A stretch of 64,000 bases of DNA, from NCBI GenBank assembly GCA_002269645.1, contig NIVC01002488.1, positions 69,590 to 133,589 of the forward strand, read 5' to 3'. How positions within the stretch are numbered: the first letter of the stretch is position 1; every line of letters begins with the position of its first letter. This DNA is from Macrostomum lignano. Its lineage: Eukaryota. The position numbers and the translations under genes are program-made. The notes under the pieces are model-generated. The model worked only from the letters and a program-made list of their open reading frames with translations, searched no databases and was not told the origin of the DNA. This document shows, one piece after another, positions 1,951 through 64,000 of this stretch.

Positions 1951-2978
1951 ATGGCTTTGCTTGGCTTTTACGATGGAATTCTAAAAGAGTTGCTTAGCGC
2001 CTGCGAAATCGCACGCAATGCTGATCAGCCCCTGCTCCAGACCGCAGAAGACTCTCCACTGCTGAAGTTCTGTCTAGAAGAGACCAATGAATCGAGTTGT
2101 CAACTCATCATTCAGCGGGCTGAAAGTGCACACCAGGTCGATGCTGTCTCAGCGCTTTGCTGGACTTCGCCGCATCACCAGGTTGCTATGAGAGTCTCAA
2201 GACAAATTGAAGACTTGACAATGGACTCTGGAAACCAGCAAACTCAGCTCATTCTGTACGACTTGTGCCGATTTGCTTTCAAATACTTGAAGGAGCCCCA
2301 AAAACCCGACCTGAAAATACTTACTAATGAAAAATTGATAATGAGCTTGTTCGACTTCAAGAGACAGCCGGACCATCAGCGAGTGGAAAATTTCCTTGTA
2401 AGTGCCTACCTGTTTATGCACCTTATCCGAGTGCCAGGTGACAGACTTATGACCGTATTTGAAGACGCAAATAGCAGCCTTTGCATCCAGATTGGTGATG
2501 GACCCCGAAGCTCGATTCGAAAGTTGACTTTCGACTGCAGCACCGAAACAGATGAGTCTTTCGAGCAACAATTTCTCAAAACCCTGAGTGAGGGTGGCTC
2601 TCCATTGTACATCTGTTTATTCTTTAACGAACTGAAGACTTGCAGCTGGTACCTCAATGAAAAGGGCAAGGACAAGCAGCACGATAGGCTCCCGAATCAT
2701 GACACAAGCTTGATCAAGCTCGAAGGCGATGGCTCGAAGCTGAATATCTCAGTGACAGCCTTCGATAGCGTTGAAGACAAATACAGCAGCTTCCAGATGG
2801 AGCTGAGTGCGGATGCAGCATTCTCACCCGATCGGTTTGGAGACGATAAGCTGCTGTCGACTGTAGTTCGCCTCGTTCGAAAAGTCGTGGTGGAGCAGAA
2901 GCCGGCCAACCTCTGCCTCGTCTGCCTTACCGTTCCGTGTCGGACAGCCATTAAGTGGTTGGACATCGCTTCCGGCAG
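1951..2978 (+). CDS. Exon 1: 342-codon N-terminal domain of unknown function
   Basis: Long ORF starting at ggcATGg. The apparent stop lies inside a CAG|GTGAGT donor at 2979. Confidence 0.75.
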
Positions 2979-5900
2979 GTGAGTCGCTTATTTTTTAATT
3001 GGGTGGAGCAGGGCTTATTGGATATTTGCTTTTTTACTGTATATACCAAAGAGGAACTGCAAAACAGATTTTAAAATTTTTGGTCACATTATTTCACTAT
3101 GGCTAGTTGCTTATTGTGGTTATAAATTGTGATATTTGTAGTCGTATACAGTGTGTGGGAGTCTTGCTCACTTTCATCGATATTTTAATGATGCCAATGA
3201 GTGTCAAAGCTGTCACCGTAACCGTAAACCGTATTACTTCATTCCGTTGCTGAGTTAACGAAGTAAAATGACAGCTAAATATTACAAATTTGAATGTGAT
3301 TTTCAAAAACGCCAGTGCTTTTATATTTTTCAGGGAGACATCATGTTGTACAGAAGAAGGCCAAACAGTCCCATCTTTTGAAGACGCTCAGTTATCGGTA
3401 GGTTTTCCAATATCCACCTGTTATATCGATTTATGTACTTAATTATTATTTTCGATTTGATTCCAACAACTATCGTTCATGATCATTTTTCTCTATAAGA
3501 AAATTAGTGCGTAGTGTTGATTAATACTAAAAACTATAGTAACCGTCTTTGTAATTAAATAAAAAAAGTTTCTTCCAATTTTCCAGATTTTTCATTCAGC
3601 AGCTAGTGGAGATGTTGCATTGCTGAGGCAGAGACTGGAGTACAACCGACTATTGGTTAGTGCTCGGCAGCAGGAGTTTCCACATCGCACCGCTCTACTC
3701 TGTGCTGCAGCAGCTGCTCCAGAATACTTTTCTCAGGGTCAACAATCGCACACTGAATGTGCGAGCCTACTCATCAACAAAGGAGCTGATGTTGGAGACT
3801 GTGACTCTCGCGGACACTCGGTGCTGCACTGTGCGGTTCTCTCTGACAATGAAAAATTGGTTGAGTTTCTGCTGAAAAATTCAACTGCAGATCCAAACAG
3901 CAGAGACGAGGATGGTCTGACACCCCTGCAGCTTGCGGTAGAGCAGGAGAACGTTGCCATGGCAGACCTATTTCTGGAAAGTGGGGTGGATGTCTGTCTG
4001 AATCCCGACGGAACCATTGTTGAACTTGTCCAAGCTCTCGACTCCGAAAACTTTGAGCTCGTGAGGACACTCCTAAATCATTGTCCGGAAGCAATGTCCG
4101 ACGACCAGTTTTATAAGTACTACTGGCAAGCGTGGAAACTGGATGCGACTCAAATCTGCAGTCTTCTTTTGATGTATGTATGCTCATAGGTATTTTCCAA
4201 AAAGTTATTTTTTTCAATCTAATCGAACTGTAAATTTTTATTGGTCACCTTTTTAGATCAAAATATGGTCTTTCGAACGAAGCGGTTCAGGTAATTTCCC
4301 CAGTTTTTCTAAGCACTGATTATATATGAAACACTTTAACATAAATGTTCTTAATGTTTATTTGCATATGACTGTATAATTGTACATTAGAATATTCATG
4401 ATTTAGAAAAGTTATTGGGTTTTTTTATCAAAGCAGCAATGAGACTTCAGACATCGTAAATCATTCCACTTTTTCGCTAAAAACCCACATTTAGGAAGCA
4501 GCTCAACTCGGTCAGTTTGCATCTCAAGGCGATGTCGAGCAGCTCAAATCGAGGCTCAGCGTCTACAACTGCAACCTCCGAGACTGGGACTGCAGAACTC
4601 CGCTAATGTGGGCAGCCATCGCTAGTTGCGACCCCACAGAGGGACATGCAGACTGTGCTCAGCTGCTGCTCAGTCTGAGAGGAAACCCTAGCGCTGCCGA
4701 TCTTGACGGCAACTCATCATTGCACTTGGCTGCAGCATCCAACAATATTGAAGTGGCGGCGCTGCTGCTGCTGCACGGAGCCGACGTGAAGGTGAAAAAC
4801 CGGAAAGGCGCCTTTCCGGCTGAGCTGGCCAAGCAAAGCGGCCAGCTGGATGTGCAACTCATCATGGAGACCGCTGAGGAGCTGGAACGGTAAGAGCTCT
4901 TTTATAGATTATGCTGATTACTATAATTAAATGTATAGTAAAATTACGATAGAGCGAAACCCGAGTTACTGAGACGCGTGTGACCCAAGTCAAGTATGAG
5001 TAGTTCCGTAAGTCTAGACTGCGTAGCGAGTGAACACCTTCGCTTCCTAAATGGCTTAATATTAAGCGGCTTATGTGGCACAATCCAGATAACAATTACA
5101 TGCATACAAAAATTGATACGAAGCCGCTTTGGTAGATTGCATCAATCCGCCGTAACGCTAGCAATAAAAAAATGAGGATTGTTCGGGAGAGGGGGTAGAC
5201 CAGGGGTCGCAAACTCAGACTCTCAGGGCTCATCCAGCCCGTAAAGCCTCTCTATGCGGCCCTTTGAAACTTCACACCTACAATTCGGTGTATATTTTTA
5301 TGCAACGTTTTGTGCTTTTATCAGCTCTCCTCTCAGTCCTCACCTCTCTCAATTCTTCTCTCTTTTCTCTTCCCTCCCCTCTCCTCCCATCTCTCCTTTT
5401 TCGCTTCTTCTTTTCTCTCATCCACTATCGTTTTTTCTATCATCTCCTCTCTCTCATCCCCTCTCCTTTATTCTCTACTCTCTTCTCAGCCCTTATCCCA
5501 TCCCTTATTTTTTCTTCTCTCTACCCTATTTCCCCTCCTTTCGTTTCTTATTTGGCCTGCAGAAACGATCTAGTTTCTTTATATAGCCTTTGGAGGAAAA
5601 ATGTTAGCCAATCCCAAGGGTAGCCAGTCGGTGGGTCGCCTGAGCAGTTTGAGTTCTGTAGGGTTGCGTTTGGTTTGGGCCGTCGGGTGGGGGCTGCTCT
5701 ATTAGTACATGTACTTGCATCTCGCTTTCTTCTCTGTGCATGCCCACCACCCCAGTTGGGTGAGTCACTTATATCGATTTATCATCGCTGACTATTTAAT
5801 CGCTCCTAAATTATCGTGCATCAAAATATACATCGTAAATTAACTCTAAATTCTCGGCTCTTACAGTTATATATGGAAATAAAGCTGTGAGTGAACTCTC

Positions 5901-8900
5901 ATGCTGGATATGAGTAGCAAAAAAATAACCTTTATATCACCGCAAATAAAACAGAGGATCAGGAAAGTTTCGACAAAATAAAAACGAAGGGAACGGAATG
6001 GAGGGAGAAGAAAAGATGAGACAAATTGTATTCTAAGAGAAGGAACGATTACTAATGGAGTTAAATAAAGGTGAGCAAATAAAAAAACGAATTGACTATT
6101 TGATGAGATGGGCAGACAACAGCCGATTGTATATCTTAGGAGGTATTAGATTAGTTAACCTGGTAAATTAGCTCGTACAAAAAAGAGCTTCATGATACCG
6201 CAGTGACAATAAGAGGCGCAGGGACGGAGCAATGACAGGGGCTGCTGGGGGCAAGAGATGGCAGGGAGACGAGAAAGCGTCTCTGGACTCCTCAAAGGCC
6301 AGGTCTCCCAGCAACGAAACCTCAGCCCGGGTGCAGGAGTCAACCTAAATAGAAAGTGAAACCCCGTGGACCCAGACCGAGTTTCAAACATTGAATAAAA
6401 TGTTAACGAAAAAATCGACACAGGGATAGTGGGGCTGTTCAAAAGCACTGGGACATAGAAGTGACTGTCATTCTCCATATCCACTTTTTTCCTCGGCCCT
6501 CTTTCTCCCTACCTCCCCTCTTTCTTCTAGCCTTTTCATTTCAGTCCCCTCTAAACCCCTCCTCTTTCTCCCTTCCGTTTTCATATCTCCCCTCATTCTC
6601 CTCTCTGACCCTCCCTTTTTCTGCCTCGCTCTTCTCCTTCTCTTCTCTTTCTCCCCATCTTTGCATCTCCTCTATCATCCTCTTTTGTCCTCCCAAAAGT
6701 CTTGGACAGTTGGCACATGTCTACAACACGCCACCTAAACTATCAACAGCCATACAATTGACCAAAATTTCAGTCGCCATGGGGCAGTCACCGTTGGAAA
6801 ATCCACAGAAATTAGAGCTGATCTGCAGATTCGACCAAGACAAACATGGAGCACCCTGTTTTACAAAGAAAATATTCGCATGGCTGGAAGCAATGGTCAC
6901 TTGAAAGTCGTCAAATTTCTCGTGACACAAGTCGCGGACCAAGCAAACAGAGATCGCTGCTGCATCTACGCTGCAGAATCTGCTGCAACAAATGGTCAAT
7001 TAGAAGTCGTCAAGTTTCTCGTTTCGACCGTCTCTGACCAAACAAAAAGAGATCGCTGCTGCATCTACGCTGCAGAATCTGCTGCAACAAATGGTCAATT
7101 AGAAGTCGTCAAGTTTCTCGTTTCGACCGTCGCTGACCAAACAAAAAGAGATGATTACTGCATCACAGCTGCAGAATCTGCTGCAAGCAACGGTCAGTTG
7201 GAAGTCGTGAAGTTTCTCGTTCCCACAGTCACTGACGAAACAAAAAGAGATTATTTCTGCATCAAAGCTGCAGAATCTGCTGTTGTCTGGGGTCAATGGG
7301 AAGTCGTCAAGTTTCTCGTTCCGACAGTCGCTGACGAAAAAAAAAGAGATTATTTCTGCATCAAGGCTGCAGAATCTGCTGCAATCAAGGGCCACTTTGA
7401 AGTCGTCAAGTTCCTCGCTCACAAAGTCACCGACCAAACAAAAAGAGATGATTGCTGCATCAAGGCTGCAGAATCTGCTGCAACAAATGGTCAATTAGAA
7501 GTCGTCAAGTTTCTCGTTTCGACCGTCGCTGACCAAACAAAAAGAGATGATTACTGCATCAAAGCTGCAGAATCTGCTGCAATCTGGGATCGGTGGGACG
7601 TCGTCAAGTTTCTCGTTCCCATAGTCACTGACAAAACAAAAAGAGATGATTGCTGCGTCAAAGCTGCAGAATCTGCTGCAATCAAGGGCCACTTTGAAGT
7701 CGTCAAGTTTCTCCTACACACAATCGCTGACCAAAAAAAAAGAAATGATTGCTGCATCAAAGCTGCAGAATCGGCTGCAACAAATGGTCAATTAGAAATC
7801 GTCAAGTTTCTCGTACACACAGTCGCTGACCAAACAGAAAGAGATGATTGCTGCGTCAAAGCTGCAGAATCTGCTGCAATCAAGGGCCACTTTGAAGTCG
7901 TCAAGTTCCTCGCCGACACAGTCTCTGACCAAGCAAAAAGAGATGATTGCTGCATCAAAGCTGCAGAATCGGCTGCAACAAATGGTCAATTAGAAATCGT
8001 CAAGTTTCTCGTACACACAGTCGCTGACCAAACAAAAAGAGATGATTGCTGCGTCAAAGTTGCAGAGTCTGCTGCAATCAAGGGCCACTTTGAAGTCGTC
8101 AAGTTCCTCGCCGACACAGTCTCTGACCAAGCAAAAAGAGATGATTGCTGCATCAAAGCTGCAGAATCGGCTGCAACAAATGGTCAATTAGAAGTCGTCA
8201 AGTTCCTCGCCGACACAGTCTCTGACCAAACAAAAAGAGATGATTTCTGGATCAAACCTGCAAAAGCTGCTGCAACAAATGGTCAATTAAAAGTCGTCAA
8301 TTTTCTCGTTTCGACCGTCGCTGACCAAACAGTAAGAGATGATTGCCGCATCAAAGCTGCAGAATCGGCTGCAACAAATGGTCAATTAGAAATCGTCAAG
8401 TTTCTCGTACACACAGTCGCTGACCAAACAGAAAGAGATGATTGCTGCGTCAAAGCTGCAGAATCTGCTGCAATCAAGGGCCACTTTGAAGTCGTCAAGC
8501 TCCTCGCCGACACAGTCTCTGACCAAGCAAAAATAGATGATTGCTGCATCAAAGCTGCAGAATCGGCTGCAACAAATGGTCAATTAGAAATCGTCAAGTT
8601 TCTCGTACACACAGTCGCTGACCAAACAAAAAGAGATGATTGCTGCGTCAAAGTTGCAGAGTCTGCTGCAATCAAGGGCCACTTTGAAGTCGTCAAGTTC
8701 CTCGCCGACACAGTCTCTGACCAAGCAAAAAGAGATGATTGCTGCATCAAAGCTGCAGAATCGGCTGCAACAAATGGTCAATTAGAAATCGTCAAGTTCC
8801 TCGCCGACACAGTCTCTGACCAAACAAAAAGAGATGATTTCTGGATCAAACCTGCAAAAGCTGCTGCAACAAATGGTCAATTAAAAGTCGTCAATTTTCT

Positions 8901-11900
8901 CGTTTCGACCGTCGCTGACCAAACAGTAAGAGATGATTACTGCATCAAAGCTGCAGAATCTGCTGTTGTCTGGGGTCAATTAGAAATCGTCAAGTTTCTC
9001 GTACACACAGTCGCTGACCAAACAAAAAGAGATGATTGCTGCGTCAAAGCTGCAGAATCTGCTGCAATCAAGGGCCACTTTGAAGTCGTCAAGTTTCTCC
9101 TACACACAATCGCTGACCAAAAAAAAAGAAATGATTGCTGCATCAAAGCTGCAGAATCGGCTGCAACAAATGGTCAATTAGAAATCGTCAAGTTTCTCGT
9201 ACACACAGTCGCTGACCAAACAGAAAGAGATGATTGCTGCGTCAAAGCTGCAGAATCTGCTGCAATCAAGGGCCACTTTGAAGTCGTCAAGTTCCTCGCC
9301 GACACAGTCTCTGACCAAGCAAAAAGAGATGATTGCTGCGTCAAAGCTGCAGAATCTGCTGCAATCAAGGGCCACTTTGAAGTCGTCAAGTTCCTCGCCG
9401 ACACAGTCTCTGACCAAGCAAAAAGAGATGATTGCTGCATCAAAGCTGCAGAATCGGCTGCAACAAATGGTCAATTAGAAATCGTCAAGTTTCTCGTACA
9501 CACAGTCGCTGACCAAACAAAAAGAGATGATTGCTGCGTCAAAGTTGCAGAGTCTGCTGCAATCGAGGGCCACTTTGAAGTCTTGAAGTTTCTCGTTCTC
9601 AAAGTCACTGACAAAACAAAAAGAGATGATTACTGCATCAAAGCTGCAGAATCTGCTGTTGTCTGGGGTCAATTAGAAATCGTCAAGTTTCTCGTACACA
9701 CAGTCGCTGACCAAACAAAAAGAGATGATTGCTGCGTCAAAGCTGCAGAATCTGCTGCAATCAAGGGCCACTTTGAAGTCGTCAAGCTCCTCGCCGACAC
9801 AGTCTCTGACCAAGCAAAAAGAGATGATTGCTGCATCAAAGCTGCAGAATCTGCTGTTGTCTGGGGTCAATTAGAAATCGTCAAGTTTCTCGTTCCGACA
9901 GTCGCTGACGAAACAAAAAGAGATGATTACTGCATCAAGGCTGCAGAATCTGCTGCAATCAAGGGCCACTTTGAAGTCGTCAAGTTTCTCCTACACACAA
10001 TCGCTGACCAAAAAAAAAGAAATGATTGCTGCATCAAAGCTGCAGAATCGGCTGCAACAAATGGTCAATTAGAAATCGTCAAGTTTCTCGTACACACAGT
10101 CGCTGACCAAGCAAAAAGAGATGATTGCTGCATCAAAGCTGCAGAATCGGCTGCAACAAATGGTCAATTAGAAATCGTCAAGTTCCTCGCCGACACAGTC
10201 TCTGACCAAACAAAAAGAGATGATTTCTGGATCAAACGTGCAAAAGATGCTGCAAGAAATGGTCAATTAAAAGTCGTCAAGTTTCTCGTTTCGACCGTCG
10301 CTGACCAAACAGTAAGAGATGATTACTGCATCAAAGCTGCAGAATCTGCTGTTGTCTGGGGTCAATGGGAAGTCGTCAAGTTTCTCGTTCCGACAGTCGC
10401 TGACGAAACAAAAAGAGATTATTTCTGCATCAAGGCTGCAGAGTCTGCTGCAATCAAGGGCCACTTTGAAGTCGTCAAGTTTCTCCTACACACAATCGCT
10501 GACCAAAAAAAAAGAAATGATTGCTGCATCAAAGCTGCAGAATCGGCTGCAACAAATGGTCAATTAGAAATCGTCAAGTTTCTCGTACACACAGTCGCTG
10601 ACCAAACAGAAAGAGATGATTGCTGCGTCAAAGCTGCAGAATCTGCTGCAATCAAGGGCCACTTTGAAGTCGTCAAGATCCTCGCCGACACAGTCTCTGA
10701 CCAAGCAAAAAGAGATGATTGCTGCATCAAAGCTGCAGAATCGGCTGCAACAAATGGTCAATTAGAAATCGTCAAGTTTCTCGTACACATAGTCGCTGAC
10801 CAAGCAAAAAGAGATGATTGCTGCGTCAAAGCTGCAGAATCTGCTGCAATCAAGGGCCACTTTGAAGTCGTCAAGTTCCTCGCCGACACAGTCTCTGACC
10901 AAGCAAAAAGAGATGATTGCTGCATCAGCGCTATAGAATCTGCTGTAATCTGGGGTCAGTGGGAAGTCGCCGAGTTCCTCATTCCGTGTCTCTCAAGTCC
11001 GAATCAAAAAGCAAATCTCCGTTTCCAATGCGCAGTGGTGGCTTGCTCTCATCTTCGCGAAGATTTCGTCGCCGCCCTCGGCCTGGAGCCCGACTGGCTC
11101 TTCCAATCCAGCACCATCCTCAGCTTCACTGCAGCAATGGCCATCGAAGGCAGGAACTCTGTTCTCACTGACACCCTCTCTCGAATGCAGCCAGCTCACA
11201 TCACACAGCTGCTTTGTCTCTCCATCTCTCAAAGACACGTCGCTCTTGCTGTCACACTGATCTATGATGAGCGAGTCAGCACAGAGCATATCGATCTGCC
11301 AGACAGCACTGGAGCCACTGCTCTCATGCTGGCAGCTGATGCAGGTCATCACGAGCTCATTGAGAAACTCATCGATCTCGGTGCGTCAGTGCGTGCTAAA
11401 GACAGTCAGGGTCGGACTGCTCTGTCACGAGCGTGCGAAGCCGGTCACGTTCGAGCAGCCAAGGCTCTGTTGGACAGAGGAGCGGATGCGAGTCATCGAG
11501 ACGGTCGGGGCCTGACGTGTGCGCAGGTGGCACAGCGATATGAGCAGCGGCAGGTGCTGCGGCTGCTAAATCCTAGTGAAGTGAGGTGAGTTAAGCGAGA
11601 ATTTAACGATTTTTTTTCAATATACGAGTATGTTGCTTAAGTATAGCATTTCTGAAATTATACGAGTTTTTCATGAGCTAGGAAACGCTTGGTAAGAATC
11701 GCTTCAAATAGAAAATACGAGTATTTCGTATGTTTGGGCCATGTAGCGAACACAAGAACGAGGGAAGAAGTGAAGAAGAAAAAAGGGGATAAAATACGAC
11801 GACAAAAAACATGTAGAAAAATATCATTTTGCATTTTTAATTTTCATGAGACAAAACAAGGAATAATTTTAAAAAGATAAGAGAGCGAAGAAACCTTATG

Positions 11901-14900
11901 TGAAAACTGTTGGATTTTGTAAAACGAGCAAAGTTTGTGATTGCGAGAAATCCAACTTGGCGCTCAGGCCTGACAATCGATACATTTTAGCAGCCGATAA
12001 TTGGGGTGGGGTTTGGGTGTTGCACGCGCACGGGCGCAGCCGCACGTTGCAAACAACCACCCCCATACACAGCTACGTACAGCATACGAGCGTAGAGCTA
12101 AGAACACCAATAGAATATTTAGGTGCATAGAATGCTCACAATTTGAATGTATTAATAATAAATGAGATTAAAAACGAAATCATTTTTTTAATTTTATTAA
12201 TCATATTAATCATATAATAATTATCCCTGCTGGCAGAGAAGAGGATCAGGCCAAGCCCAGTACGTACGCACATCTGGCCAGGTGGTGGGGCACGAACAGG
12301 CCCCTGCTTGGGCACTAATGCCGGTTTGCTCAGGTGCAAACACAGAGCAGACCACATTCGCTTCAATATCCTAAACTCTGAAGACTCGAATATCCGGTCC
12401 AACAAGTGACCTTCTCTTACAATTTGCGGATTTCTCCCACTCTTTTCTCGGCTTTCTCTTGTTTATTGCCTGCTTTCTCTCGGTCATCTGCTTCTGCCTG
12501 CATCTACTTACTCTTTTTGATTTTTCTGCCCGAAAAAGCGTTGGAGTTTTGATGAAGCTGCACTAACTGGGCGCTTCGCCTTGAAATGCTTTTACAATGG
12601 AAGTTTCCGACTCAATGAAGTTGGTTTGTGCTTCATGAGAATCTCAGACTCAACTGCTGTGAGAACCCTTGGCTTTCTCCTTCCCTTGCAGAAGCTCAAA
12701 GGCCGAGCAGGCAGCCGCACACTGCTTGGATTCGGGCCTCCATCGGTGAGTCTGACCGGTTCGGCTTTCACTGCCGCACTGCGCCTTCCAACAGGCTGGC
12801 AGCTTGGGACAGAAATTGTAGCGAAACTCAGGTGGGTTAAGATTGGGTTGGACTGAGTGCTGAAGCAGCTGCACTCTCAGCTCTCCTGCTTGCTCTATCC
12901 ATCTAACTCTGAACAAATCACCCACACGCATGTCGGATCATTTTAGGCTCTCAGACGACTCCCAGAAAGACAGGCGCCTGAGCGAGGAGCTGCATCGATT
13001 GCTCAGTGAGGCGGGATTCACCAGAGAGAGAGCGGACTGTCAACAGAGACTGGCTGACTGGCTTGAACGAGTCGCTCGAGTCCTCACACAGGATGACAGA
13101 CAGATGACGGGCAGCTACGCAGAGGGCTGGGCCAACAGTCTGGTTCAAGTGAACGGCAGGACAGCTGCAGACTCGGACATTGACTGGACTGTACTGGTTT
13201 CTGGGAAACTGTTTCATCTGGAAGGCAGCTGCATAAGATTGAATAAGTCCTGCAGAGACGCCACTCGGCTGCAGGTCACGGAGGGCCACGCACAGGTGGC
13301 AGTGGAAGCAGGTTAGTGAGGCTGAGTTCATCATCAGAATGCTCATCAAATGCATCAGAATGACACAAGCGGCAGGCGAAATTAAAAAGAAAACTCTGAT
13401 GCCAACTGGCTGAGCCATTGGGTTTTGAATTCACAGGCTCCAATTGTAGCAGAGTGGGTGCAGCGCTGTTTGAGTGATGGACGGTAGGCGGCATGGCTCT
13501 GCTGAGGTGCTGCTACTCTTACTGAGAAAGTTTCAAAAAATAAAACGAAGCCGCTCCGACTGTCTGATTGGTGCCTTGCTGCGAGGCAATGAGTCCAGAT
13601 AATGTTTGATTTGTGCTGAGCTAGCTACATGTATAACCCGAGAAAGCCAGAACAGCTGAAGCTGAAGGGGTCTACGACAATTTTACCGCCACCCTATTTT
13701 ACCTTGTCTAGAACGGCCGTAAAATTTTCTGGCGGTCAGTTGTCGGTCTCCCAAGCTGAAGCTATGCAAACTCAGTTTACTCAGTAAACTCAAACTCATT
13801 TAGACAGCGTCCAAATTCTCTGGCGTGTTATCAAGCAGCTTGAGCGGGATGCCAAAATCGACTAAATAAAAATTAAAAGTCTAAATAAGCGCGTACACGC
13901 ACTTTAAATACACGCACTGGCAAAAGCGCTCAGAAACCAAAATAATTTCAGCGCGCTGGTGATTTCGATCAGGAGAGCCAAGTCAAGTGCACTTTTACTT
14001 GACAATAAATTCGATCGAAGGCATTAGTGGTAAACATATGCACATTATAACTCTTTCACTACTGATCCACTGATGACACAATTTGATACTTGTAAAGGCT
14101 ATGCAAATCGTTTTTTGCATATACAATCATGCAAATGAATGATCGAATTTTAAAGCTTCCGAACTGTACATGTAACTCCCTATCGCGCGCTTGCCAGTGC
14201 GTGCCTGAAGCATATTTCATCGGACAGTCAAATACTCGATATTCCCAACCAGCCAAGAGAAAATCTGCTGTTTTTAAGCCAACTCATCTATTTTACTCGC
14301 CACAAAGCAACTCTCCGCTCACTGCGTTCTGCAGGTGGCCAACCTGCAGTGACAGCCACGGCGTGCGGTGTGCGGCCTGCACAGGACACGTGCCATGCGA
14401 CCCGGTGCTGCAGAAGTTTCTGTGAGGACAGAATTGAAAAACTGCTCTTATACAGTGATTCTGTTCACCTCGTTCGGGCGACCAGACCGAGCTCGACCAA
14501 CGAGCTCAGAGTGAGCTTCAGCTTCCAAGAGAAACGGATCATGAGAGAGCTGAGCACAATCCAGGGCCAGCTGTTCACACTCATCAAGTTCATCTTCAAG
14601 AGATACTTGCCGCTCACTCTGGACACACCTGGACTCAAGACCTACCATGCAAAGACTCTGCTCTTCACAATGCTGGAGAAGTATGACACAGATCCTAAGA
14701 CTGTGGTTTGGCAGCCCCATAATCTGATCGCTCTGCTCAAGGAGTCTCTCAACATGATGCTGAGCTTCATCGACTCAAGCAGCTCGCCCGATGAGTGCAT
14801 GCCGCACTTCTTCATGCCCGACGCTCCGCTCTACTTCAAGTACGCTGGAATCGGCGGCGACTTCGACAACACGAAGGCGAGGGTTCGAGACCAACTTTGT

Positions 14901-15791
14901 GAACTGAGAAGCGACATCGGCGGAGTGGTAAAGCAGCTGAGGAGACTCGTGAGACCTCCGCAGTCAGAGAAGTTCTATTTTCACCCGTTCACTCTGCTGC
15001 CTCTGACAGCACCGCCTGCTGTCACGGAGATCAGGAAAGGACGTGGCTCTCAACAATTGTACTGCAAGTTCGCAGATGTGTACAGTTTGGTGCACCAGTG
15101 TGTAAGTGAGCTGCAGTCGGAATCGAGCGACAGAGACACCCTGATGAAGCACCTCAGTCTCCTGCATGAGCAGCAGTGGTGCAAGTGCGCCGCCTTGTGC
15201 ATGACCGCCATGGCGCATTTGAAGTTTGGAGAATCTGAGGAGGCTGAGAGACTCGCGATGGAGCTGCAGAGACATCAGATTGAGTCAGGGTTGAAGCCAC
15301 AGGATATTCGAGAAGAGAGCTGGTGGAACATTACTCGTACAAAACTGCCAGAAGACTCAGACTGGGCATGGAGGTTCTGCCTCCCCTGCGACTCTTCGCC
15401 TCACTTCCCGTTCCTTCCCGAGTTCACACAATCTCTATTCACAGCCAGACTGTCGCAGCCTCTCGCCTCCCACCTGTACGTGAACTTCCGCTGCCTGAGC
15501 TGGAGTCTCCAAGCTGAGCTGCTCCGCAATCGCGCACCTGCAATCGCATTCGATCATTGGATTGAACAGCTGCTTGAAGACCCGGACTTGGAGGAGCTGC
15601 TCACTCTGGCTCACTACAGCGACTGCTGCGAGCACGTGGAGCTCAGCCTGCAGCAGATGGAGATGATCAAGAAAGAGAGACGCGTCGCCATAGAGACGCA
15701 GGACGAGGAGAAGATCAGCTGGGTCAGACAGAAGCTGGAGAGACTTAATGATGCAGTAGCCGAAGTCCATCGGTCGGAAAAGGAAGGCTGA
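1951..15791 (+). CDS. Predicted 7-exon giant ankyrin-array / Mab-21 (cGAS-like, cGLR) protein, about 2903 aa
   Basis: Exons 1951-2978, 3334-3397, 3587-4177, 4495-4889, 6774-11585, 12947-13311, 14335-15791. All introns are GT-AG, all phases match (2,0,0,2,2,1), and the total of 8712 nt is divisible by 3. The 4889-6774 junction is the weakest. Confidence 0.55.
3334..3397 (+). CDS. Exon 2 (64 nt, ETSCCTEEGQTVPSFEDAQLS)
   Basis: Acceptor tttttcag| at 3333 and donor GTAGGT at 3398. Converts phase 2 to phase 0 as the model requires. Confidence 0.6.
3587..4177 (+). CDS. Exon 3: canonical ankyrin repeats
   Basis: Motifs GHSVLHCAVLSDNEKLVEFLL and GLTPLQLAVEQENVAMADLFL. Acceptor ttccag| at 3586, phase-0 donor GTATGC at 4178. 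Confidence 0.8.
4495..4889 (+). CDS. Exon 4: canonical ankyrin repeats
   Basis: Motifs CRTPLMWAA and GNSSLHLAAASNNIEVAALLLLHGADV. Acceptor ttag| at 4494, donor CG|GTAAGA at 4890. Confidence 0.8.
5201..5617. mobile_element. Non-autonomous hAT (Charlie/Buster-like) MITE with a CT-rich interior, in intron 4
   Basis: 5' end CAGGGGTCGCAAAC, degenerate inverted 3' end GTTAGCCAATCCCAA, and flanking 8-bp near-duplication GGGTAGAC/GGGTAGCC with central TA. The 3' part resembles the reverse complement of 23202-23266. Confidence 0.55.
6774..11585 (+). CDS. Exon 5: 41 tandem 33-aa ankyrin-like repeats plus one degenerate unit, a linker, and 3 canonical ankyrin repeats
   Basis: Track ORF 6880-11589 (1569 aa), with the frame open back to 6739. 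Unit core AAxxG(Q/H)(L/F/W)EVVKFL. C-terminal GATALMLAA, GRTALSRAC and GLTCAQVA. The apparent stop overlaps the donor AG|GTGAGT at 11586. Confidence 0.9.
6883..10990 (+). repeat. Coding 99-bp tandem array (41 units starting at 6982, plus a degenerate first unit)
   Basis: Unit starts at 6982 and 10942 differ by exactly 40 x 99 nt, with no indels or stops. Confidence 0.95.
12947..13311 (+). CDS. Exon 6: nucleotidyltransferase core of a Mab-21/cGAS-like domain
   Basis: GSYAEG at 13110-13127 and S-D-I-D at 13173-13184. Acceptor ttttag| at 12946 (phase 2), donor GTTAGT at 13312 (phase 1). Confidence 0.85.
14335..15791 (+). CDS. Exon 7: Mab-21 domain C-lobe plus a helical C-terminal region
   Basis: Mab-21-type motifs QDTCHA (candidate third Asp), VHLV, ELRVSFSFQEK, LKTYHAKTLLF and CMPHFFMP. 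Acceptor ctgcag| at 14334 (phase 1), stop TGA at 15789-15791. Confidence 0.9.
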
Positions 15792-18700
15792 GTCAGACTG
15801 ACTGTCTGGTGCGGTGTTCGATGCTGACACAATTTTCATTTACTTTGGTTTTGTTCAATCAAACTGTTTATTCTGCTGCATGCTGGCTTGATGAGGGTTC
15901 TGCGTATTCTGCCAATTTCTGTCTAATTTAGCAACTTAAATGCTGCTTTGGTTTGTCTGCTTTTCAGGAAATGAGCACATCGAGAGCCATCGAGTAGGAG
16001 TAGCCCTTCTGCTATTATCTGCAAATTGGTACACTTGTTCTGCAATTCAATTCACACACTGCATGCTAAATCGTTTTTTTCCGTTCAAACTGCGCATCTG
16101 CTTTGATGTGGACTTTTCTCTGAGATTTTGTTCTGTATTCTTCAATACTTTTTAAGAGGTTTTTTAGGCTAAATGTACAGGCAGTAATTATCAGCATGAA
16201 CCTTGAAAGGTCTTAGGGTCAGCTGGGTCGGTTCGAAGCAGGAAAAGCTTGCTTCAGGAAAAAGCAAGAAGGTTCAACCATGCTGTCGCTAAATATTATG
16301 CATCACTGATCAGTGACCAATCGCTCAAAGATCGATGCCTCTCGGATTGCTCTGAAGCTAGTGAATACTTAGCCTGTTGGATTAGTGCTGCTGAAATAAC
16401 CTTTTTGATGGCGTAATGAAAAAGACTTATTTTCCAGTGACGTCAATTAACGTCAGTTTCGTCGGTGGACATGAACAAGTTGCAAGGGTAGCTTGTAACA
16501 AAGATGTTTGAGTAGACAACTAGGATACATACTCAAGTCATCCAATTAGCTTGTGCATATACTCGTACATGTAATTGCATGCTTGCTTTTTGTAATTTAC
16601 TTTCTGTCGCCGGTTAGATACACTGCAGTGCAGATCTAACTGGCTTTGTTGTTCTCATGCATGGATTGCTGCATGCTTCCCACACCATCCTAGCGCAACT
16701 TACATGTATTCTCTGCTTTCGACGTTTATCTCTTGTAACTCATCTGTTTGTGTTTGCTTAATTTATCGCTGAGTTAGTTTATTTTTCGCTTCTCGGATCT
16801 CGGAAGTTTCAAATCTTTGGAGATATCAATTCGTGTTACATTGCCTGTTTCAGTTGAATCCGCTATGGTGTCATCATCGTGTGGTAGCACTGACGTTTAA
16901 AATATACAGCGTATATCCTCCTGCTTTGATTTACTAGTACTGTGCATGCTATGTTGCAGTTAAAATTCTATTTTTGTGTCAATAAGCATGCATGTGCCTG
17001 CGCCAGTTGTTTCTTGTATACGTTTTACTCCGCAGCAGTTACTTCCCTTAACAATCTCAGTTGATCAGTAAAGTAAGGTGCATTGTTTGTCGTAGCATTT
17101 GGGACATATCCACAGGATTCAGGAACACCCCATATAACTTTCACCAGCCTCTCCCAGCTCCTTGGCTACGCCCCTGCCTGTGATCCTGATCACAAACGGT
17201 TGATGAAACACTTGGGGCAACTAGAAATGATCGACTCAAAAACTCATCGAATGACTAGATAGTTGTTGCTATGATGCATTACATGCATTCCTGCGTGGCA
17301 TTGATGCACGCACAGACAAACAATGTATCTCGTAAATAAAGTGCGTACATGTACGTCTGTGCTGCGTGACAGCAGCTGGTTTAGGGTGCTTATTAACTGT
17401 TGCTGAGTGCATGTACTCGTAATGTTCCACTATTGCATGTACATATAGCTATCTGGTAATATAATAGATTTTTTGCAAAATCTTAAATATTCTGAACAAC
17501 TTCCATGTTTGTATTAATTTACCACTCTTTTCGTTAAAAATTCCATAATCATTTTAAATATGTGCAACCCGAGTTAAGAATATTACGTCACCTTTACTAT
17601 GTATTAGAGGATTATGTTTGGGTACAATACGCACTATCTTTTACTTCTTGGGCTAGAAGGTGTCGGAATGTTTATCTAATTTTTTGTACATGTACCTTGA
17701 AATTACTTGTGCTGTATTCGTATTTTGCTGATTCAGCGTCTTGTTTTAACCTCCCTTACTACTTTTTAAATATAACGACTCGTGATTACATGAGCCTCTG
17801 CACACGCCTTCGTGTGTTTTCTTACTTCTATAGCTGAATACTGTGAACCGCATGAAAAATGCAAGGACCACAAATAGCTAATTTATACTCGTAGTTGGTA
17901 GTCCTTGGAAGAATGTAAAGAGCCACGGGCCCTATTCGCATGTAACTCCATAATGATTTGATTTGACTCACGCTCGACCACATATACCACATGTATAGAC
18001 TAGATACATGTTGTACGTTGGCCTTCATATTTTTTCGTGTGTAGCACTCGTCGAATTCACGCACCGGCCGGATGAGGGCCGATGAGGCCAGAGCCTCCAG
18101 ATCGTCGACAGTCGAATTGATTCGCGGCGTGCCCAGCATCATCAACCTACTAATTACAGTAATAAGGAGAGCGGACGAAATAGCACCTAAACCTAAAAGA
18201 ATCTCGGATCGCTACTGTATAGAAGTCGGCATGGCAACCATAAGCAGCAAAAGAACCGCGTGCGTCAAAACGCTATTCCAAACTGCTTAGTCACATCTCC
18301 TGTTAATTTTCCCCTAGAGTCTAGATGCAGAGTATCTGAATTCGATTTTGAATCTCTCTTTTTCCGCATTGTTTTTGTTTAAACAAGCGAGTGCTTCGAG
18401 GAAAATTCGGCCGCAGAAATTGAAATTCGCCCCTGTAATAAAATTGATGCCGATATAAGCGTTAGAAATTTGAAAGAAGGTCATCCAAAACCAACCAAAA
18501 GCATCCACCAGACCATTTTAGATAAAGTGCAGCCCGTAGCGATCGAGATGAGCGCGACACGGCCTGTCGGAGCTGGAGTGCGACGGCAGGGATCGGGGGA
18601 TCGGGCACGCCCAACTCTGGCGACCAACCACGCAGTAAAAGTACAGTAAAATATAAATCGAATACAAATACAAGTAGCACACGATGCGAAATACGAGCTA

Positions 18701-29405: not shown

Positions 29406-30110
29406 ATGGCGCCACCCACTGAGTCAACTGTTGCACTCAAGCTGCCCACGTTTTGGGCCATGCAGCCACGCGCGTGGTTCATCCAGGCAGAGGCCCAGTT
29501 CCAGCTGCGCGGCATCACCCAGGACGACACCAAGTATCACCACTTGGTCGCCTCGCTTGATCAACAAACCGCCGAGCGCCTGCTGGACGTTCTGGAAAGC
29601 CCTCCGAGCGAGGACAAATACGGCAAACTGAAAGGGCGCCTGCTCGGCACTTTCAGTCTCACCCGGCAGCAGCGAGCTAGCCGTTTGCTCAGCATGTCCG
29701 GCCTGGGAGATCGCCGGCCGTCCGAGATGATGGACGAGATGCTGGCCCTGCTTGGTGATCACCGGCCTTGCCTGCTCTTTGAGGAGCTGTTCCGCCAGCA
29801 GCTGCCCGTGGACATCCGGATGGCGCTCGCATCCGCCGACTTCGAAGACCCCCGGACAGTCGCGCAGCTCGCCGACCAGCTCTGGGCCAGCCGTCCCCAG
29901 CCAGTGGCCGCTTCCGCCCAGTTGGCAGGTCCGCCGGAGGTTTGCGCTGCGCGTCAGGCTGCGCGTCCCCGCACCACGTCGCCCCGGCCTGTGCACCGCG
30001 GCACCCGCGCCCAGGAGCTGTGCTACTTCCACCGCAAGTTCGGCGCGAAGGCTAGGCAATGCGAGCAGCCCTGCAGCTTTCCGGGAAACGGGCCGGCCGG
30101 CCGCCAGTGA
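29406..30110 (+). CDS. gag: Gag (234 aa) with a CHCC zinc motif
   Basis: LKLPTFW...[11 protein letters not shown]-terminus and C-x2-H-x9-C-x3-C ([18 protein letters not shown]), typical of the CsRn1 lineage. Confidence 0.93.
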
Positions 30111-33100
30111 CCATCGCGGCGGCCGGCAACCTGCTGCTCATCCCCGACGTCCCATCCGGCCGGCGGTTCCTGGTGGACACAGGCGCCGAGGTAAGCATTT
30201 TCCCAGCCTCTGCAGATGATGCCCGCGCCCGTTCACCTGGCCCGCCGCTGTTCGCCGCGAACGGCACCCGCATCCGAACCTTCGGCGGCCGCAGCATCAC
30301 ACTGGACGTCGGCCTGAAGACCTGCACCTGGCCATTCGTGTTGGCTGAGGTCTCCCGGCCGTTGATCGGCGCCGACTTCCTGCGCCACCACGGCCTGCTG
30401 GTGGACCTGCCCAACCGCCGCCTTCTGGACGCCGCCTCCCTGGCCAGTGTGCAATTGCTGGCTGGCTCCGGTTCTGCGCCTCAGCTCGCCGCCGCGGTTG
30501 CCAGGGACCCGTACAGCCGGTTGCTGGCGGAGTTCCCCAGCATCACGGAGCCCAGTTTCAGCAAAGCCACGCCGCGGCACGGCGTGGAGCACTACATCCC
30601 GACGACGGGCCCGCCGGTGCACGCTAGAGCGCGCCGCCTGCCGCCCGACAAGCTGGCCGCGGCCAAGGAAGAGTTTCGCAACCTGGAGCAGCTCGGCATT
30701 GTGCGGCGGTCCAGCAGCCCCTGGTCCTCGCCGCTGCACATGGTGCCCAAGACTTCCGGCGGTTGGCGGCCCTGCGGCGATTTCCGGCGGCTCAATGACG
30801 CCACGGTGCCCGACCGCTACCCCGTGCCGCATATCCAGGATTTCTCAGCGCGCCTGAGCGGCTGCACAGTGTTCTCGAAGATCGACCTGGTGCGGGGCTA
30901 CCACCAGATCCCGGTCGCGCAAACGGACATCCCGAAGACCGCCGTCATTACACCGTTTGGGTTGTTTGAGTTCCTCCGCATGCCGTTCGGGTTGAAAAAT
31001 GCGGCACAGGCCTTCCAGCGGTTAGTAGATTCTATCTGCCAGGACCTGCCGGCCGTCTTCGCGTACATCGACGATTTCCTGGTCGCCAGCAGCAGCCCCG
31101 AGCAGCACGAGGAGCACCTGCGGAAGCTGTTCCAGCGCCTCGCCGACAACGGCCTGTTGCTCAACCCAGCCAAGTGCCAGTTTGGCCGCAGCGAGATCGA
31201 TTTCCTCGGCCACAGGATCAGCGCTGCGGGCGCCATGCCGCTGCCGGACAAGGTCGACGCAGTCGCCAGGTTCGCGCCGCCCACGACGGTGAAGGGTCTC
31301 CAGGAGTTTGCCGGCATGGTGAACTTCTATCACCGCTTCGTGCCCCGCGCAGCCCGGTTGCTGCGCCCGATCTACCAGGCCATGGCCGGCAAGGAGAAGC
31401 TGGTGCGGTGGACGCCGGAGCTGACCGAGGCCTTCGACAAGACCAAGCAGGCGCTGGCCGACGCGACCATGCTGGCGCACCCCAGGCCCGACGCGCCGCT
31501 GGCCCTCACCGTAGATGCTTCTGACACCGCCGTGGGCGCCGTCCTCGAGCAGCGTGTCGGCCCCGCCTGGCAGCCGCTCGCATTCTTCAGCCGGCAGTTG
31601 CGACCTGCGGAGGTAAAGTACAGTGCCTTCGACCGCGAGCTCCTGGCACTGTACCTAGCGGTCCGCCACTTCCGTTACCTCCTTGAGGGGCGCCACTTCA
31701 CAGCCTACACGGACCACAAGCCGTTGGCCGCCGCCATGGCCAAGCTGTCCGACCCGTGGTCCGCTCGGCAGCAGCGGCACCTGGCGTACGTGAGCGAATT
31801 CACCACGGACGTCCAGCACATCGCCGGCAAGAACAATCCGGTGGCCGACGCGCTGTCCCGCTGCACCGTGGCCAGCGTGCTACCCGGCATCGATTTTGCA
31901 GCGATGTCGCAGGCCCAGCATGCCCCGACCGAGTTGCCGCCGCCCGGCTCCGGCCTCCGACTGGAGCGCGTGACCCTCCGCCCAGGCCTGGAGCTGCTCT
32001 GCGACGTCTCCACCGGCCATCCCCGCCCGCTGGTGCCGCCCGAATTTCGACGGCCGGTGTTCGACGCCATCCACGGCCTTGCGCACCCATCAATCCGCAG
32101 CTCCCGCCGCCTCGTTGCAGACCGTTTCGTCTGGCCCGGCCTCAACCGCGACGTCGGCCGTTGGGCTCGCAGCTGCCTCGCCTGCCAGACGACTAAGGTC
32201 CAGCAGCATGTTGTCAGCCCGCCAGACAGCATCCCGGTGCCCCGCGACCGCTTCGCGCACGTGCACATCGACCTGGTGGGCCCGCTTCCGCACTCTCAAG
32301 GGTGCTCGCACCTGCTGACCGTTGTCGACCGGTTCACGCGTTGGCCGGAAGCAATTCCGCTGGCAGACACGTCCGCCGCTACCTGTGCGGCCGCATTCAT
32401 CGCGCACTGGATTGCCCGTTTCGGTGTGCCAAGCGACCTCACGTCAGACCGCGGCCCGCAGTTCACCTCGGAGCTGTGGTCCAACGTGTCCCGCTTGCTT
32501 GGCACGCAGCTGCACCAGACGACGGCCTTCCACCCACAGGCCAACGGGCTTGTGGAGCGGTTCCACCGGCAGCTCAAGGCTTCCCTGATGGCGCGGCTGA
32601 CGGGCCGTCCTGGACTGCCGAGCTGCCCTGGGTGTTGCTCGGCATCCGCACCGCTCCCAAGGAGGATCTCGGCACGTCATCGGCGGAGTTGGTGTACGGA
32701 GTCCCACTGGCGGTGCCGGGCGAGTGTCTGCAGACCAGCTCGCCTACGGGCCATGACGGGTTCCTCGCGCGCCTGCGCCAGGCCGTGCAGGCTTTCCGCC
32801 CGCCACCGACCTCCCAGCATGGCCGCCGCCCCACCGCCTTGCCTGCTGTCTTGGACACCTGCACGCACGTCTTCGTCCGCCGCGGCGGGCACCGACCGGC
32901 GCTGCAACCGCCTTATCTAGGTCCCTTCAAGGTGCTGGAGCGCGGCGCTAAGGCTTTCCTCCTCGACCTCGTCACTAGGCGGGACTTCGTGTCGGTGGAC
33001 CGGCTCAAGCCAGCGGCGCTTGACCCTGCGAGCCCGGTTTCGACGCCTCAAATTCGGCCAAGGGGGCGCCCACCGCGTGAGCCCACCGTCCCGGGCGCCG

Positions 33101-33222
33101 CGACGGCCGAACCGCTGCGCCGCCGCCCGCCGCGGCGCCGCCAGCCACGCCGCCGTTGCCGTCGAGTACCGGAGGCCACCGCTGGGGGGAGCCGTGTGGC
33201 GGACAAGTGCAAGCACACCTGA
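30059..33222 (+). CDS. pol: Pol polyprotein (PR-RT-RNaseH-IN) with a single 1-nt frameshift near 32602
   Basis: LVDTGA protease, YIDD RT, DASD...TDHKPL RNase H, and an integrase with H..H..C..C and HIDLVG/SDRG. The IN C-terminus ([14 protein letters not shown]...GPFKV) continues in track ORF 32302-33222. Confidence 0.93.
30083..30127 (+). promoter_or_regulatory. -1 programmed ribosomal frameshift signal
   Basis: Slippery G GGA AAC at 30083-30089 in the gag phase, a 6-nt spacer, and a perfect 10-bp GC stem (30096-30105 with 30118-30127). pol is in the -1 frame. Confidence 0.85.
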
Positions 33223-42511: not shown

Positions 42512-57383
<14,872 letters not shown>

Positions 57384-59065: not shown

Positions 59066-59990
59066 TAGCAATCCACTCTGTTCGATTAGGCTATAGATTA
59101 GCAATCCACTCTGTTCGATTAGGCTATAGATTAGCAATCCACTCTGTTCGATTAGGCTATAGATTAGCAATCCACTCTGTTCGATTAGGCTATAGATTAG
59201 CAATCCACTCTGTTCGATTAGGCTATAGATTAGCAATCCACTCTGTTCGATTAGGCTATAGATTAGCAATCCACTCTATGTTCAAGTAGGCTATAGATTA
59301 GTAATCCACTCTATATTCAAGTAGGCTATAGATTAGCAATCCACTCTATGTTCAAGTAGGCTATAGATTAGCAATCCACTCTATGTTCAAGTAGGCTATA
59401 GATTAGCAATCCACTCTATGTTCAAGTAGGCTATAGATTAGCAATCCACTCTATATTCAAGTAGGCTATAGATTAGCAATCCACTCTATATTCAATTAGG
59501 CTATAGATTAGCAATCCACTCTATGTTCAAGTAGGCTATAGATTAGCAATCCACTCTATGTTCAAGTAGGCTATAGATTAGCAATCCACTCTATGTTCAA
59601 GTAGGCTATAGATTAGCAATCCACTCTATGTTCAAGTAGGCTATAGATTAGCAATCCACTCTATGTTCAAGTAGGCTATAGATTAGCAATCCACTCTATG
59701 TTCAAGTAGGCTATAGATTAGCATCCACTCTATATTCAAGTAGGCTATAGATTAGCAATCCACTCTATATTCAAGTAGGCTATAGATTAGCATCCACTCT
59801 ATATTCAAGTAGGCTATAGATTAGCATCCACTCTATATTCAAGTAGGCTATAGATTAGCAATCCACTCTATATTCAAGTAGGCTATAGATTAGCAATCCA
59901 CTCTATCCAATTAGACTATGGATTAGCAATCCACTCTATATTCAATTAGGCTATAGATTAGCAATCCACTCTATCTAATTAGGCTATGGA
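59066..59990 (+). repeat. 33-bp then 35-bp satellite related to the 42-bp family
   Basis: Shares TAGATTAGCAATCCA(C/T)TCT with the 42-bp unit. Confidence 0.92.
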
Positions 59991-60092
59991 TTAGATTGGC
60001 AAACTACATTGGTTAGTAATTATTATGATATTATTATTAGTAGTAGTAGTAGTAGTACAACATAACTCACGCGGTAATCTTAAAGATTAAGT

Positions 60093-63300: not shown

Positions 63301-64000
63301 AATTGAATAGAATGGATTGCTAATCTAGCCAATCACAGATCAATTGGAATAGAATGGATTGCTAATCTAGCCAATCACAGATCAATTGGAATAGAATGGA
63401 TTGCTAATCTAGCCAATCACAGATCAATTGAATAGAATGGATTGCTAATCTAGCCAATCACAGATCAATTGGAATAGAATGGATTGCTAATCTAGCCAAT
63501 CACAGATCAATTGGAATAGAATGGATTGCTAATCTAGCCAATCACAAATCAATTGGAATAGAATGGATTGCTAATCTAGCCAATCACAGATCAATTGGAA
63601 TAGAATGGATTGCTAATCTAGCCAATCACAGATCAATTGGAATAGAATGGATTGCTAATCTAGCCAATCACAAATCAATTGGAATAGAATGGATTGCTAA
63701 TCTAGCCAATCACAGATCAATTGGAATAGAATGGATTGCTAATCTAGCCAATCACAGATCAATTGGAATAGAATGGATTGCTAATCTAGCCAATCACAGA
63801 TCAATTGGAATAGAATGGATTGCTAATCTAGCCAATCACAGATCAATTGGAATAGAATGGATTGCTAATCTAGCCAATCACATCAATTGGAATAGAATGG
63901 ATTGCTAATCTAGCCAGTCACAGATCAATCGAATAGAATGAATTGCTAATCTAGCCAATCACAGATCAATCGGAATAGAATGGATTGCTAATCTAGCAAT
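60347..64000 (-). repeat. 42-bp satellite in reverse orientation (about 87 copies, runs off the window)
   Basis: Reverse complement of the 55215-56372 unit. Confidence 0.97.

Follow-up and report, generated by a model that had tools for sequence, protein, structure and literature searches.

Gene structure and unit array

The stretch of DNA analysed here, hereafter the window, comprises 64,000 nt of contig NIVC01002488.1 (GenBank assembly GCA_002269645.1, positions 69,590 to 133,589, forward strand) of the flatworm Macrostomum lignano, and it bears at 6880-15791 on the plus strand a gene of three exons, the first of which encodes a long array of ankyrin-derived units and the other two a cGAS/Mab-21-like domain. 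The open reading frame (ORF) at 6880-11589 (+), of 1,569 codons, holds 33-residue units in perfect register, which were delimited by cutting its translation in 33-residue steps. The array itself extends over 6979-11037 (+) as 41 tandem units of 99 nt, i.e. 33 residues, with no indel, and Tandem Repeats Finder reports a single 99-nt array at 6883-10980 (41.4 copies, score 4840). It is preceded by unit 0 (6880-6978, +), opening with the first in-frame ATG (MAGSNGHLKVVKFL...) and bearing the di-residue SN, and its unit 41 forms a degenerate C-terminal cap.

The original prediction, made from the letters of this DNA, had considered the two residues at unit positions 4 and 5 (the di-residue) as a repeat-variable code. 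The di-residue string it gave across the 41 units matches exactly the translation in 33-residue steps (TN 17, IK 14, VW 5, IW 2, and SN, IE and RN once each), and the linkage it described to the residues that follow, namely TN-GQL (17/17), IK-GHF (14/14) and VW-GQ(L/W), is correct. The observation of a patterned 41-unit array is thus real and beyond chance.

Downstream of the array, exon 1 ends with a conserved linker and two or three canonical ankyrin repeats (11038-11585, +, the repeats at ~11284-11502), with Pfam Ank/Ank_2 matches on residues 1469-1541 and, over 11038-11585, 87% identity to the paralogue P0001. Intron 1 (11586-12946, +) is of the GT...AG type, keeps the frame and has its donor AG|GTGAGT at 11585/11586; the stop codon at 11587 was rejected as the end of the protein, since this donor spans it and the frame runs into homologous exons. 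The cGAS/Mab-21-like domain starts in exon 2 (12947-13311, +; TGSYAEGW...SDIDW), which is 77% identical to P0001 by tblastn, and, past intron 2 (13312-14334, +; GT...AG), exon 3 (14335-15791, +) encodes the rest of the domain, including the Mab-21_C match, followed by a helical C-terminal region and the stop codon. The spliced product is in frame and counts 2,175 residues. An exact-sequence look-up with the 1,569-residue product found no identical product on record.

Upstream of unit 0, a leader remnant (6757-6879, +) is in frame with the array and homologous to the N-terminal leader of the family; the N-terminus of P0001 matches at 6763-6936 by tblastn, and an in-frame stop codon lies at 6736, upstream of the leader. 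The paralogues start with MGQxLSS, which we take to be an N-myristoylation-like motif. The family start ATG GGC reads ATT GAC at 6757-6762 (ACAATTGACCAA vs. ACAATGGGCCAA in a DNA alignment with the P0004 and P0001 loci), the window copy being there without the start codon and Gly2 when compared with L001 and L002 at 3001-3006. Because the family start codon has been lost, the window copy is either N-terminally shortened or a young pseudogene. An out-of-frame ATG at 6779, opening a 41-codon ORF (6779-6904, MGQS...), was also considered as a relic of the family start and rejected, because the homologous start is at 6757; the resemblance is a coincidence arising from CAT GGG GCA G.

Predicted fold of the unit

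On the array, Pfam gives Ank_4 (E=4e-150, 22 stretches) and Ank_2 (E=2e-140, 25 stretches), and its repeat families are ankyrin only. AlphaFold was run on units 8-19 with eight 12-unit windows of the array as alignment input, and returned a predicted local distance difference test (pLDDT) score of 92.7 and a predicted template modelling (pTM) score of 0.79. As modelled, the unit consists of a 17-residue helix (positions 21-33 and 1-4, reaching 5 in IK units), a turn at 5-7, a 10-residue helix at 8-17 and a turn at 18-20, with no hairpin. In a Foldseek search of the PDB, the top 50 matches listed are almost all ankyrin-repeat proteins or designed ankyrin repeat protein (DARPin) constructs, those named among them being DARPins, AnkB, ankyrin-1, espin, NOMPC and FEM1C, with template modelling (TM) scores of 0.55-0.61 to the long natural arrays (AnkB, ankyrin-1, NOMPC). 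Neither transcription activator-like effector (TALE), nor pentatricopeptide repeat (PPR), nor PUF families were matched in Pfam, and no TALE occurs in these top 50 Foldseek matches.

The unit aligns without gap to the ankyrin consensus (AA-xx-G(Q/H)-LEVVKFL vs. AA-xx-GH-LEIVEVLL), and therefore the di-residue falls on ankyrin positions 13/14; its assignment to the AAxxGH positions randomised in designed libraries, as proposed from the sequence, was right. The window units carry KAAE where the consensus has TPLH, and Cys and Val in place of Gly4 and Gly27. Despite the loss of TPLH and of the hairpin glycines, these units are a derived ankyrin variant and not a non-member of the family. In the model, the inner helix closes with the di-residue as its final turn and C-cap. 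Unit position 8 corresponds to the buried Leu17 of the ankyrin consensus.

A second variable patch had been placed at the hairpin. Its variants are indeed present, as DDCC, DDYC, DYFC, DDFW and NDCC all occur at unit positions 25-28, but this segment is predicted helical, lying in the model inside the inner helix three turns before the di-residue, and it is not hypervariable; with entropies of 0.62, 0.70, 1.32 and 0.65 bits, positions 25-28 are mildly variable. At 100 degrees per residue, positions 26 and 4 would point to one side of this helix and the conserved Cys at position 28 to the opposite one. A Cys-Cys pair is found at positions 27-28 of nearly all units (68 Cys in the array) and is conserved among family members. 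Its predicted place is within the long helix, Cys28 lying on the conserved face, and a packing ladder, a metal or redox site, or acylation are possible roles.

Distribution of variation and copying history

Across the 41 units, entropy exceeds 1 bit at 10 of the 33 positions and is below 0.5 bit at 10 others. The highest value is found at position 16 (1.99 bits), followed by positions 4 (1.68) and 5 (1.61), then 22, 15, 8, 19 and 27. The description of the scaffold as largely constant thus holds in part, given those 10 positions above 1 bit and the rank of position 16 above the di-residue. Mean pairwise identity between units is 72% for the protein and 85% for the DNA, with 81% identity to the consensus.

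The variable residues are not free of one another. Of the entropy at positions 3, 7 and 8, 83-91% is accounted for by the class of the di-residue, as compared with 31-44% at positions 15, 16 and 22; in fact, residues 3-8 form a single block that takes three main states, each of which is also linked to the end of helix 2 with its loop and to the preceding "hairpin" residues. In the structural register, the latter are paired with the di-residue of the next unit (CCV with IK, CCI with TN, YCI with VW, FWI-KPAK with TN), at a mutual information of 1.29 bits vs. 0.58 expected, a value exceeded in none of 5,000 shuffles.

At the DNA level, about 14 unit types can be distinguished, in the order ABCDEBFGHIHIJKHIHIJKLGHIIHMLINGHJKDGHIHIO, with H and I present nine times each. 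DNA-identical twins exist for 17 of the 41 units, units 9-14 are distinguished from units 15-20 by 5 of 594 nt, and the block G-H-I is present three times with at most one difference. Besides, recombinant units occur, the head SAVVWGQ being borne by three distinct tails (types D, L and N). The order of the units in the array follows from the duplication of multi-unit blocks, and with a few composite types spread in this way to make up a mosaic, the string does not amount to 41 independent choices. As read from the DNA, the TN/IK/VW string of the window gene would be mainly a record of copying, written with three composite letters.

Synonymous and non-synonymous changes were compared as simple pairwise counts on recombining repeats, expressed as proportions of synonymous (pS) and non-synonymous (pN) differences, the window array providing 28 distinct DNA units. 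Overall, this array has a pS of 0.196 (bootstrap 0.11-0.29) and a pN of 0.154. At codons 4 and 5, pN amounts to 0.40 and 0.44 (0.42 pooled), about 2.2 times the array pS; codon 16 reaches 0.56 (2.8 times), codons 15, 19 and 22 stand at 1.4-1.6 times, codons 26-29 at 0.5-1.2 times, and the rest of the scaffold shows a pN of 0.082 vs. a pS of 0.132. By these simple counts, the expectation that the variable residues would exceed the synonymous background holds for the di-residue (pN 0.42 vs. pS 0.196) and not for the second patch (0.5-1.2 times). When codons 4 and 5 are taken together in six paralogues, the ratio of their pN to the array pS is 0.9 in P0001, 1.3 in P0002, 5.7 in P0004, 2.7 in P0005, 6.6 in P0007 and 0.9 (saturated) in P0008, so that pN at these codons lies above the array-wide pS in five of seven arrays (the window and the six paralogue loci). 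The core positions change at 0.2-0.5 times the array pS in six of the seven arrays, P0007 being the exception; judged from these counts, the core positions of the family units are under purifying selection.

The cGAS/Mab-21-like domain

In the C-terminal domain, the only Pfam match is Mab-21_C (PF20266), at 25-26 bits (25.1 vs. a cut-off of 24.1); PF03281 is not matched in this domain, exon 2 alone has no Pfam match, and the spliced protein has none to NACHT or NB-ARC. A PDB sequence search with the domain returned only a chance match, to alanine dehydrogenase (E=0.24), and for this reason the fold was recognised via AlphaFold and Foldseek. The AlphaFold model has a pLDDT of 83 and a pTM of 0.85, and Foldseek places it closest to mouse and human cGAS and to MAB21L1 (E ~6e-6, target TM 0.50-0.56, 13-18% identity). 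On this structural prediction, the domain has the cGAS/Mab-21 nucleotidyltransferase fold. A GS loop (G55-S56) and D77-I-D79 are present, S56 and D77 being conserved in the family alignment, and the third acid is possibly E178 in ELRVSF, as placed by pattern alone.

A family of Macrostomum paralogues

The best database relatives of the protein are all hypothetical proteins of M. lignano that share its architecture. With the C-terminal domain as query, an exhaustive HMMER search gathered 166 clusters at 50% identity, including 99 at E<=1e-10; all nine strong-match clusters sampled are from M. lignano, and the one weak-match cluster sampled (E ~1e-5) is a mollusc Mab-21-like protein. On sequence similarity, the family thus appears restricted to M. 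lignano as far as strong matches are concerned. Within the window, tblastn revealed no other family member outside 6700-15900, and searches of the literature on Macrostomum with ankyrin, Mab-21, cGAS or STING yielded no description of the family.

In the 53 annotated paralogues examined, the arrays that could be delimited have 1-19 units, the 41 units of the window array being more than twice the longest of these. In the 22 paralogues where four or more units could be delimited (164 units in all), the mean within-protein entropy ranks the positions as 4 > 1 > 5 > 30 > 7 > 16 > 17 > 8 > 19 > 33, and positions 4 and 5 appear, from such comparisons, to be the fastest-evolving ones family-wide. 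Along the long helix, variability is one-sided, affecting positions 23, 26, 30, 33 and 4 (family-wide, permutation p=0.0025). Among 177 paralogue units, 66 distinct di-residues were counted, including charged and aromatic residues, and the head motifs of the window, TNGQL, IKGHF and VWGQ(L/W), occur in none of them. Isoelectric points (pI) of the paralogue arrays range from 5.0 to 9.6. In the ten-unit array of P0004 (L001, 3124-4113), the scaffold is near-invariant even synonymously (pS 0.05) and change is concentrated at positions 1, 4-8 and 33 (pN 0.35 vs. 0.03). This array is the nearest to a TALE-like layout and a better candidate than the window array for recognition letters.

Sequences surrounding the gene

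Upstream of the gene, an ORF at 1951-2982 (+) encodes 343 residues with no Pfam match and another at 3620-4189 (+) 189 residues with three canonical ankyrin repeats; neither has a tblastn match to family proteins at E<1e-6, and they are probably exons of a separate gene. Further downstream, the coding region of a Ty3/gypsy-type long terminal repeat (LTR) retrotransposon occupies 29406-33222 (+), where a DUF7041 gag-like ORF is followed by reverse transcriptase, RNase H, integrase zinc-binding and integrase core domains, the last part in another frame; its GC content is 0.61-0.68 vs. 0.35-0.50 around. At 42741-47380 and 48163-52945 lie dense unrelated minisatellites and microsatellites with long spurious ORFs on both strands, the repeats being a 23-nt unit (x79), a 30-nt unit (x32), (TGTC)n (x160) and units of 28-29, 98 and 163 nt. 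A 42-nt satellite forms two arrays of opposite orientation, at 55221-56374 (~27 copies) and at 60401-63997 (~86 copies, to the end of the window), flanking ~4 kb that include a 35-nt satellite at 59066-59994.

Discussion

With moderate confidence, the region can be considered to encode the N-terminal repeats of a protein that is specific to Macrostomum, combines ankyrin units with a cGAS/Mab-21-like domain and has a putative binding surface diversified by unit shuffling. The unit is an ankyrin repeat that lost TPLH and the hairpin glycines, its long inner and short outer helices being predicted to stack as a solenoid. The di-residue, together with the stripe on the same helix, would form a fast-changing ligand-binding surface, most likely for a protein or peptide, diversifying between paralogues through point changes, located where the inner helix ends and along the exposed stripe, as well as through reshuffling of the units. 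Judging by the way identical and recombinant units are intermingled in the array, single units as well as multi-unit blocks would be copied and reordered by unequal crossing-over and conversion; the window gene would have undergone a recent amplification of few unit types, chiefly an alternating pair of TN type and IK type. By analogy with innate immune receptors that join repeats to a signalling domain, the array may serve the C-terminal cGAS-like domain as a sensor or adaptor, by recruiting or regulating it. It is the helical stripe seen family-wide, together with the excess at codons 4 and 5, that makes a diversifying binding surface plausible. The natural combinatorial binding surface first proposed is thus retained as a plausible variable ankyrin surface with family-level support, and loses its combinatorial two-residue code, which is unsupported given the three composite states.

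Several observations weigh against this interpretation. In the window array alone, the helical-stripe test is not significant (p=0.14), and position 16 and the cluster 15/19/22, at the end of the outer helix and in its loop, vary as much as the di-residue or more; besides, exposure was deduced from helical periodicity and conservation and not from coordinates. The local pS at codon 4 of the window array is also high (0.57); instead of positive selection, the excess at this codon may reflect an island of old divergence that patchy conversion has left in place. In P0001 and P0008, codons 4 and 5 do not exceed the array pS. As for the gene itself, the ancestral ATG became ATT in the window copy, and the non-repeat parts compared with two paralogue loci have synonymous divergences (dS) of 0.09-0.21 with non-synonymous to synonymous ratios (omega) of 0.56-0.67, indicative of weak constraint.

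These last points suit a non-adaptive explanation, which we regard as unlikely, in which the window gene is a decaying paralogue whose 99-nt unit grew in a minisatellite-like manner, the frame and the di-residue pattern being inherited from functional ancestors and serving no present function. The loss of the start codon, the omega of ~0.6 outside the repeats, an array more than twice as long as any delimitable in the 53 paralogues, the abundance of minisatellites across the window and the want of an identical product on record all agree with it, and the identical twins (17/41) and near-identical blocks mean that the long open frame needs no selection. Yet, the spliced frame of 2,175 codons is intact with both introns canonical GT-AG and in frame, an in-frame ATG opens the array, and between unit types the scaffold codons keep pN (0.082) below pS (0.132). 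Above all, decay accounts for the state of the window copy and not for the family-wide change at positions 4 and 5.

Structural co-variation, which seems to us quite improbable, would have the linked residues around the inter-helix turns (3, 4, 5, 7, 8 and 15, 16, 19, 22) vary for the packing of alternating unit types, L/F/W at position 8 pairing with T/I/V at position 4, in an array that serves as a spacer, spring or scaffold without ligand contact. The clustering of variable sites at both turns of the helical hairpin and not on the inner face alone, the shift of residues 3-8 as one block, and position 8, which corresponds to that buried leucine, are in line with this view, as are long ankyrin arrays that act mechanically, such as NOMPC, which is a Foldseek match here. 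In 14 of 15 cases the unit before an IK unit is not of the IK type (p=0.0026), pointing to a super-repeat of two units, but the duplication of two- and six-unit blocks explains the alternation equally well. Packing is moreover unlikely to explain 66 di-residues, charged and aromatic ones included, on the near-invariant scaffolds of the paralogues, nor does it fit P0004, where variation is almost wholly at positions 1, 4-8 and 33.

A true modular code, in which, as TALE and PPR proteins do, the array would read a periodic ligand (a nucleic acid, a glycan or a repetitive protein) with one di-residue per element, is highly improbable, as the strict 33-residue register of 41 units with no indel, the TALE-like placement of the variable pair at the end of a helix or in a turn, and the near-invariant scaffold of P0004 with its hypervariable patch are set against three main states that are each bound to at least four other residues, a patch in P0004 that covers positions 1, 4-8 and 33 and not a pair, a fold and sequence family that are ankyrin with no TALE, PPR or PUF match, an acidic array among paralogues of pI 5.0-9.6 with hence no consistent basic groove, a unit order explained by block duplication and further variation at the other turn of the hairpin. 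The TALE/PPR-like code suggested for the window gene is accordingly unsupported, its three main states being tied to residues 3, 7 and 8, its order to block copying and its fold to ankyrin. Similarly, nothing points to the repetitive polymer or nucleic acid proposed as ligand, and the acidity of the array (pI 5.7, net charge -27) argues indirectly against a polyanion. That each unit type is a genuine recognition letter, by which the array reads in order a periodic ligand or a defined series of partner sites with one unit for each, has very little chance of being right; if true, shuffling across the ~100 Macrostomum paralogue clusters would amount to a programmable receptor repertoire switching on a cGAS-like signalling domain. 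With TAL effectors, the array shares two-helix units of 33-35 residues, a variable pair at the inter-helix turn and repeat recombination, but there is no sequence or fold relationship, variation here extends beyond the pair and the array is acidic. A TALE-like code would matter greatly if true, but the present data do not support it.

Returning to the shuffled binding surface, the closest known systems are found elsewhere. In the fungal NOD-like receptors (NLRs) of the STAND (signal transduction ATPases with numerous domains) class, the ANK, TPR (tetratricopeptide) or WD repeats are highly conserved within a protein, are polymorphic in number and carry sites under selection on their concave face (Dyrka et al., 2014; PMC4986451). 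The Macrostomum proteins resemble them by near-alike tandem ankyrin units that differ in number, are reshuffled and vary at positions of the inner helix or binding face, as well as by the joining of repeats to a signalling or effector domain in a large lineage-specific family. They differ by the lack of NACHT/NB-ARC, the partner being cGAS/Mab-21-like, by an animal host, and by a mean protein identity between units of 72% vs. the fungal criterion of >=85% over >=100 residues, although sub-blocks are identical here. Variation in repeat number (1-19 delimitable units in the paralogues vs. 41) and reshuffling of units, through block duplications and recombinants, were both found, between paralogues and not alleles.

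Among cGAS-like receptors (cGLRs), 87% are single enzymatic proteins and fusions to ankyrin or TPR are a minority, e.g. in the coral Stylophora pistillata (Li et al., 2023; bioRxiv 10.1101/2023.02.22.529553). The Macrostomum protein likewise joins a domain of cGAS/Mab-21 fold to ankyrin repeats; however, its nucleotidyltransferase-like domain is very divergent (Mab-21_C at 25 bits, 13-18% identity to cGAS) with putative catalysis, and its array is far longer and made of a derived hairpin-less repeat.

With respect to ankyrin repeats in general, the high-entropy positions of natural ones are 2, 3, 5, 10 and 13, then 12, 14, 16, 22, 25, 26 and 30, and such positions were chosen or noted in consensus-library designs (PMC4308713), as embodied in the DARPin concept (PMC8683736). 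Positions 10, 13, 14, 16, 25 and 26, of high entropy in natural repeats generally, overlap the variable sites reported here (PMC4308713). The window array has in common with DARPins the fold family, as seen from its best Foldseek matches, and a di-residue at library positions 13/14; it departs from them by KAAE for TPLH, Cys at Gly4 and a beta-turn region predicted helical, and the counterparts of the randomised turn positions are not hypervariable in the window array.

The interest of the locus lies mainly in an undescribed Macrostomum ankyrin plus cGAS-like family and in its hairpin-less repeat. The former, with ~100 clusters at 50% identity in M. lignano, would combine a shuffling derived ankyrin solenoid with a divergent cGAS/Mab-21-like domain, an association of which no description was found in the literature searched. 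The latter, with its predicted 17-residue inner helix, would offer protein engineers a natural scaffold variant. Should the repeats prove to be sensors, the family would constitute a candidate repertoire of innate immune receptors in an animal used as a model of regeneration, and would then provide, after the fungal NLRs, a second independent case of receptor diversity achieved by the reshuffling of near-identical ankyrin units.

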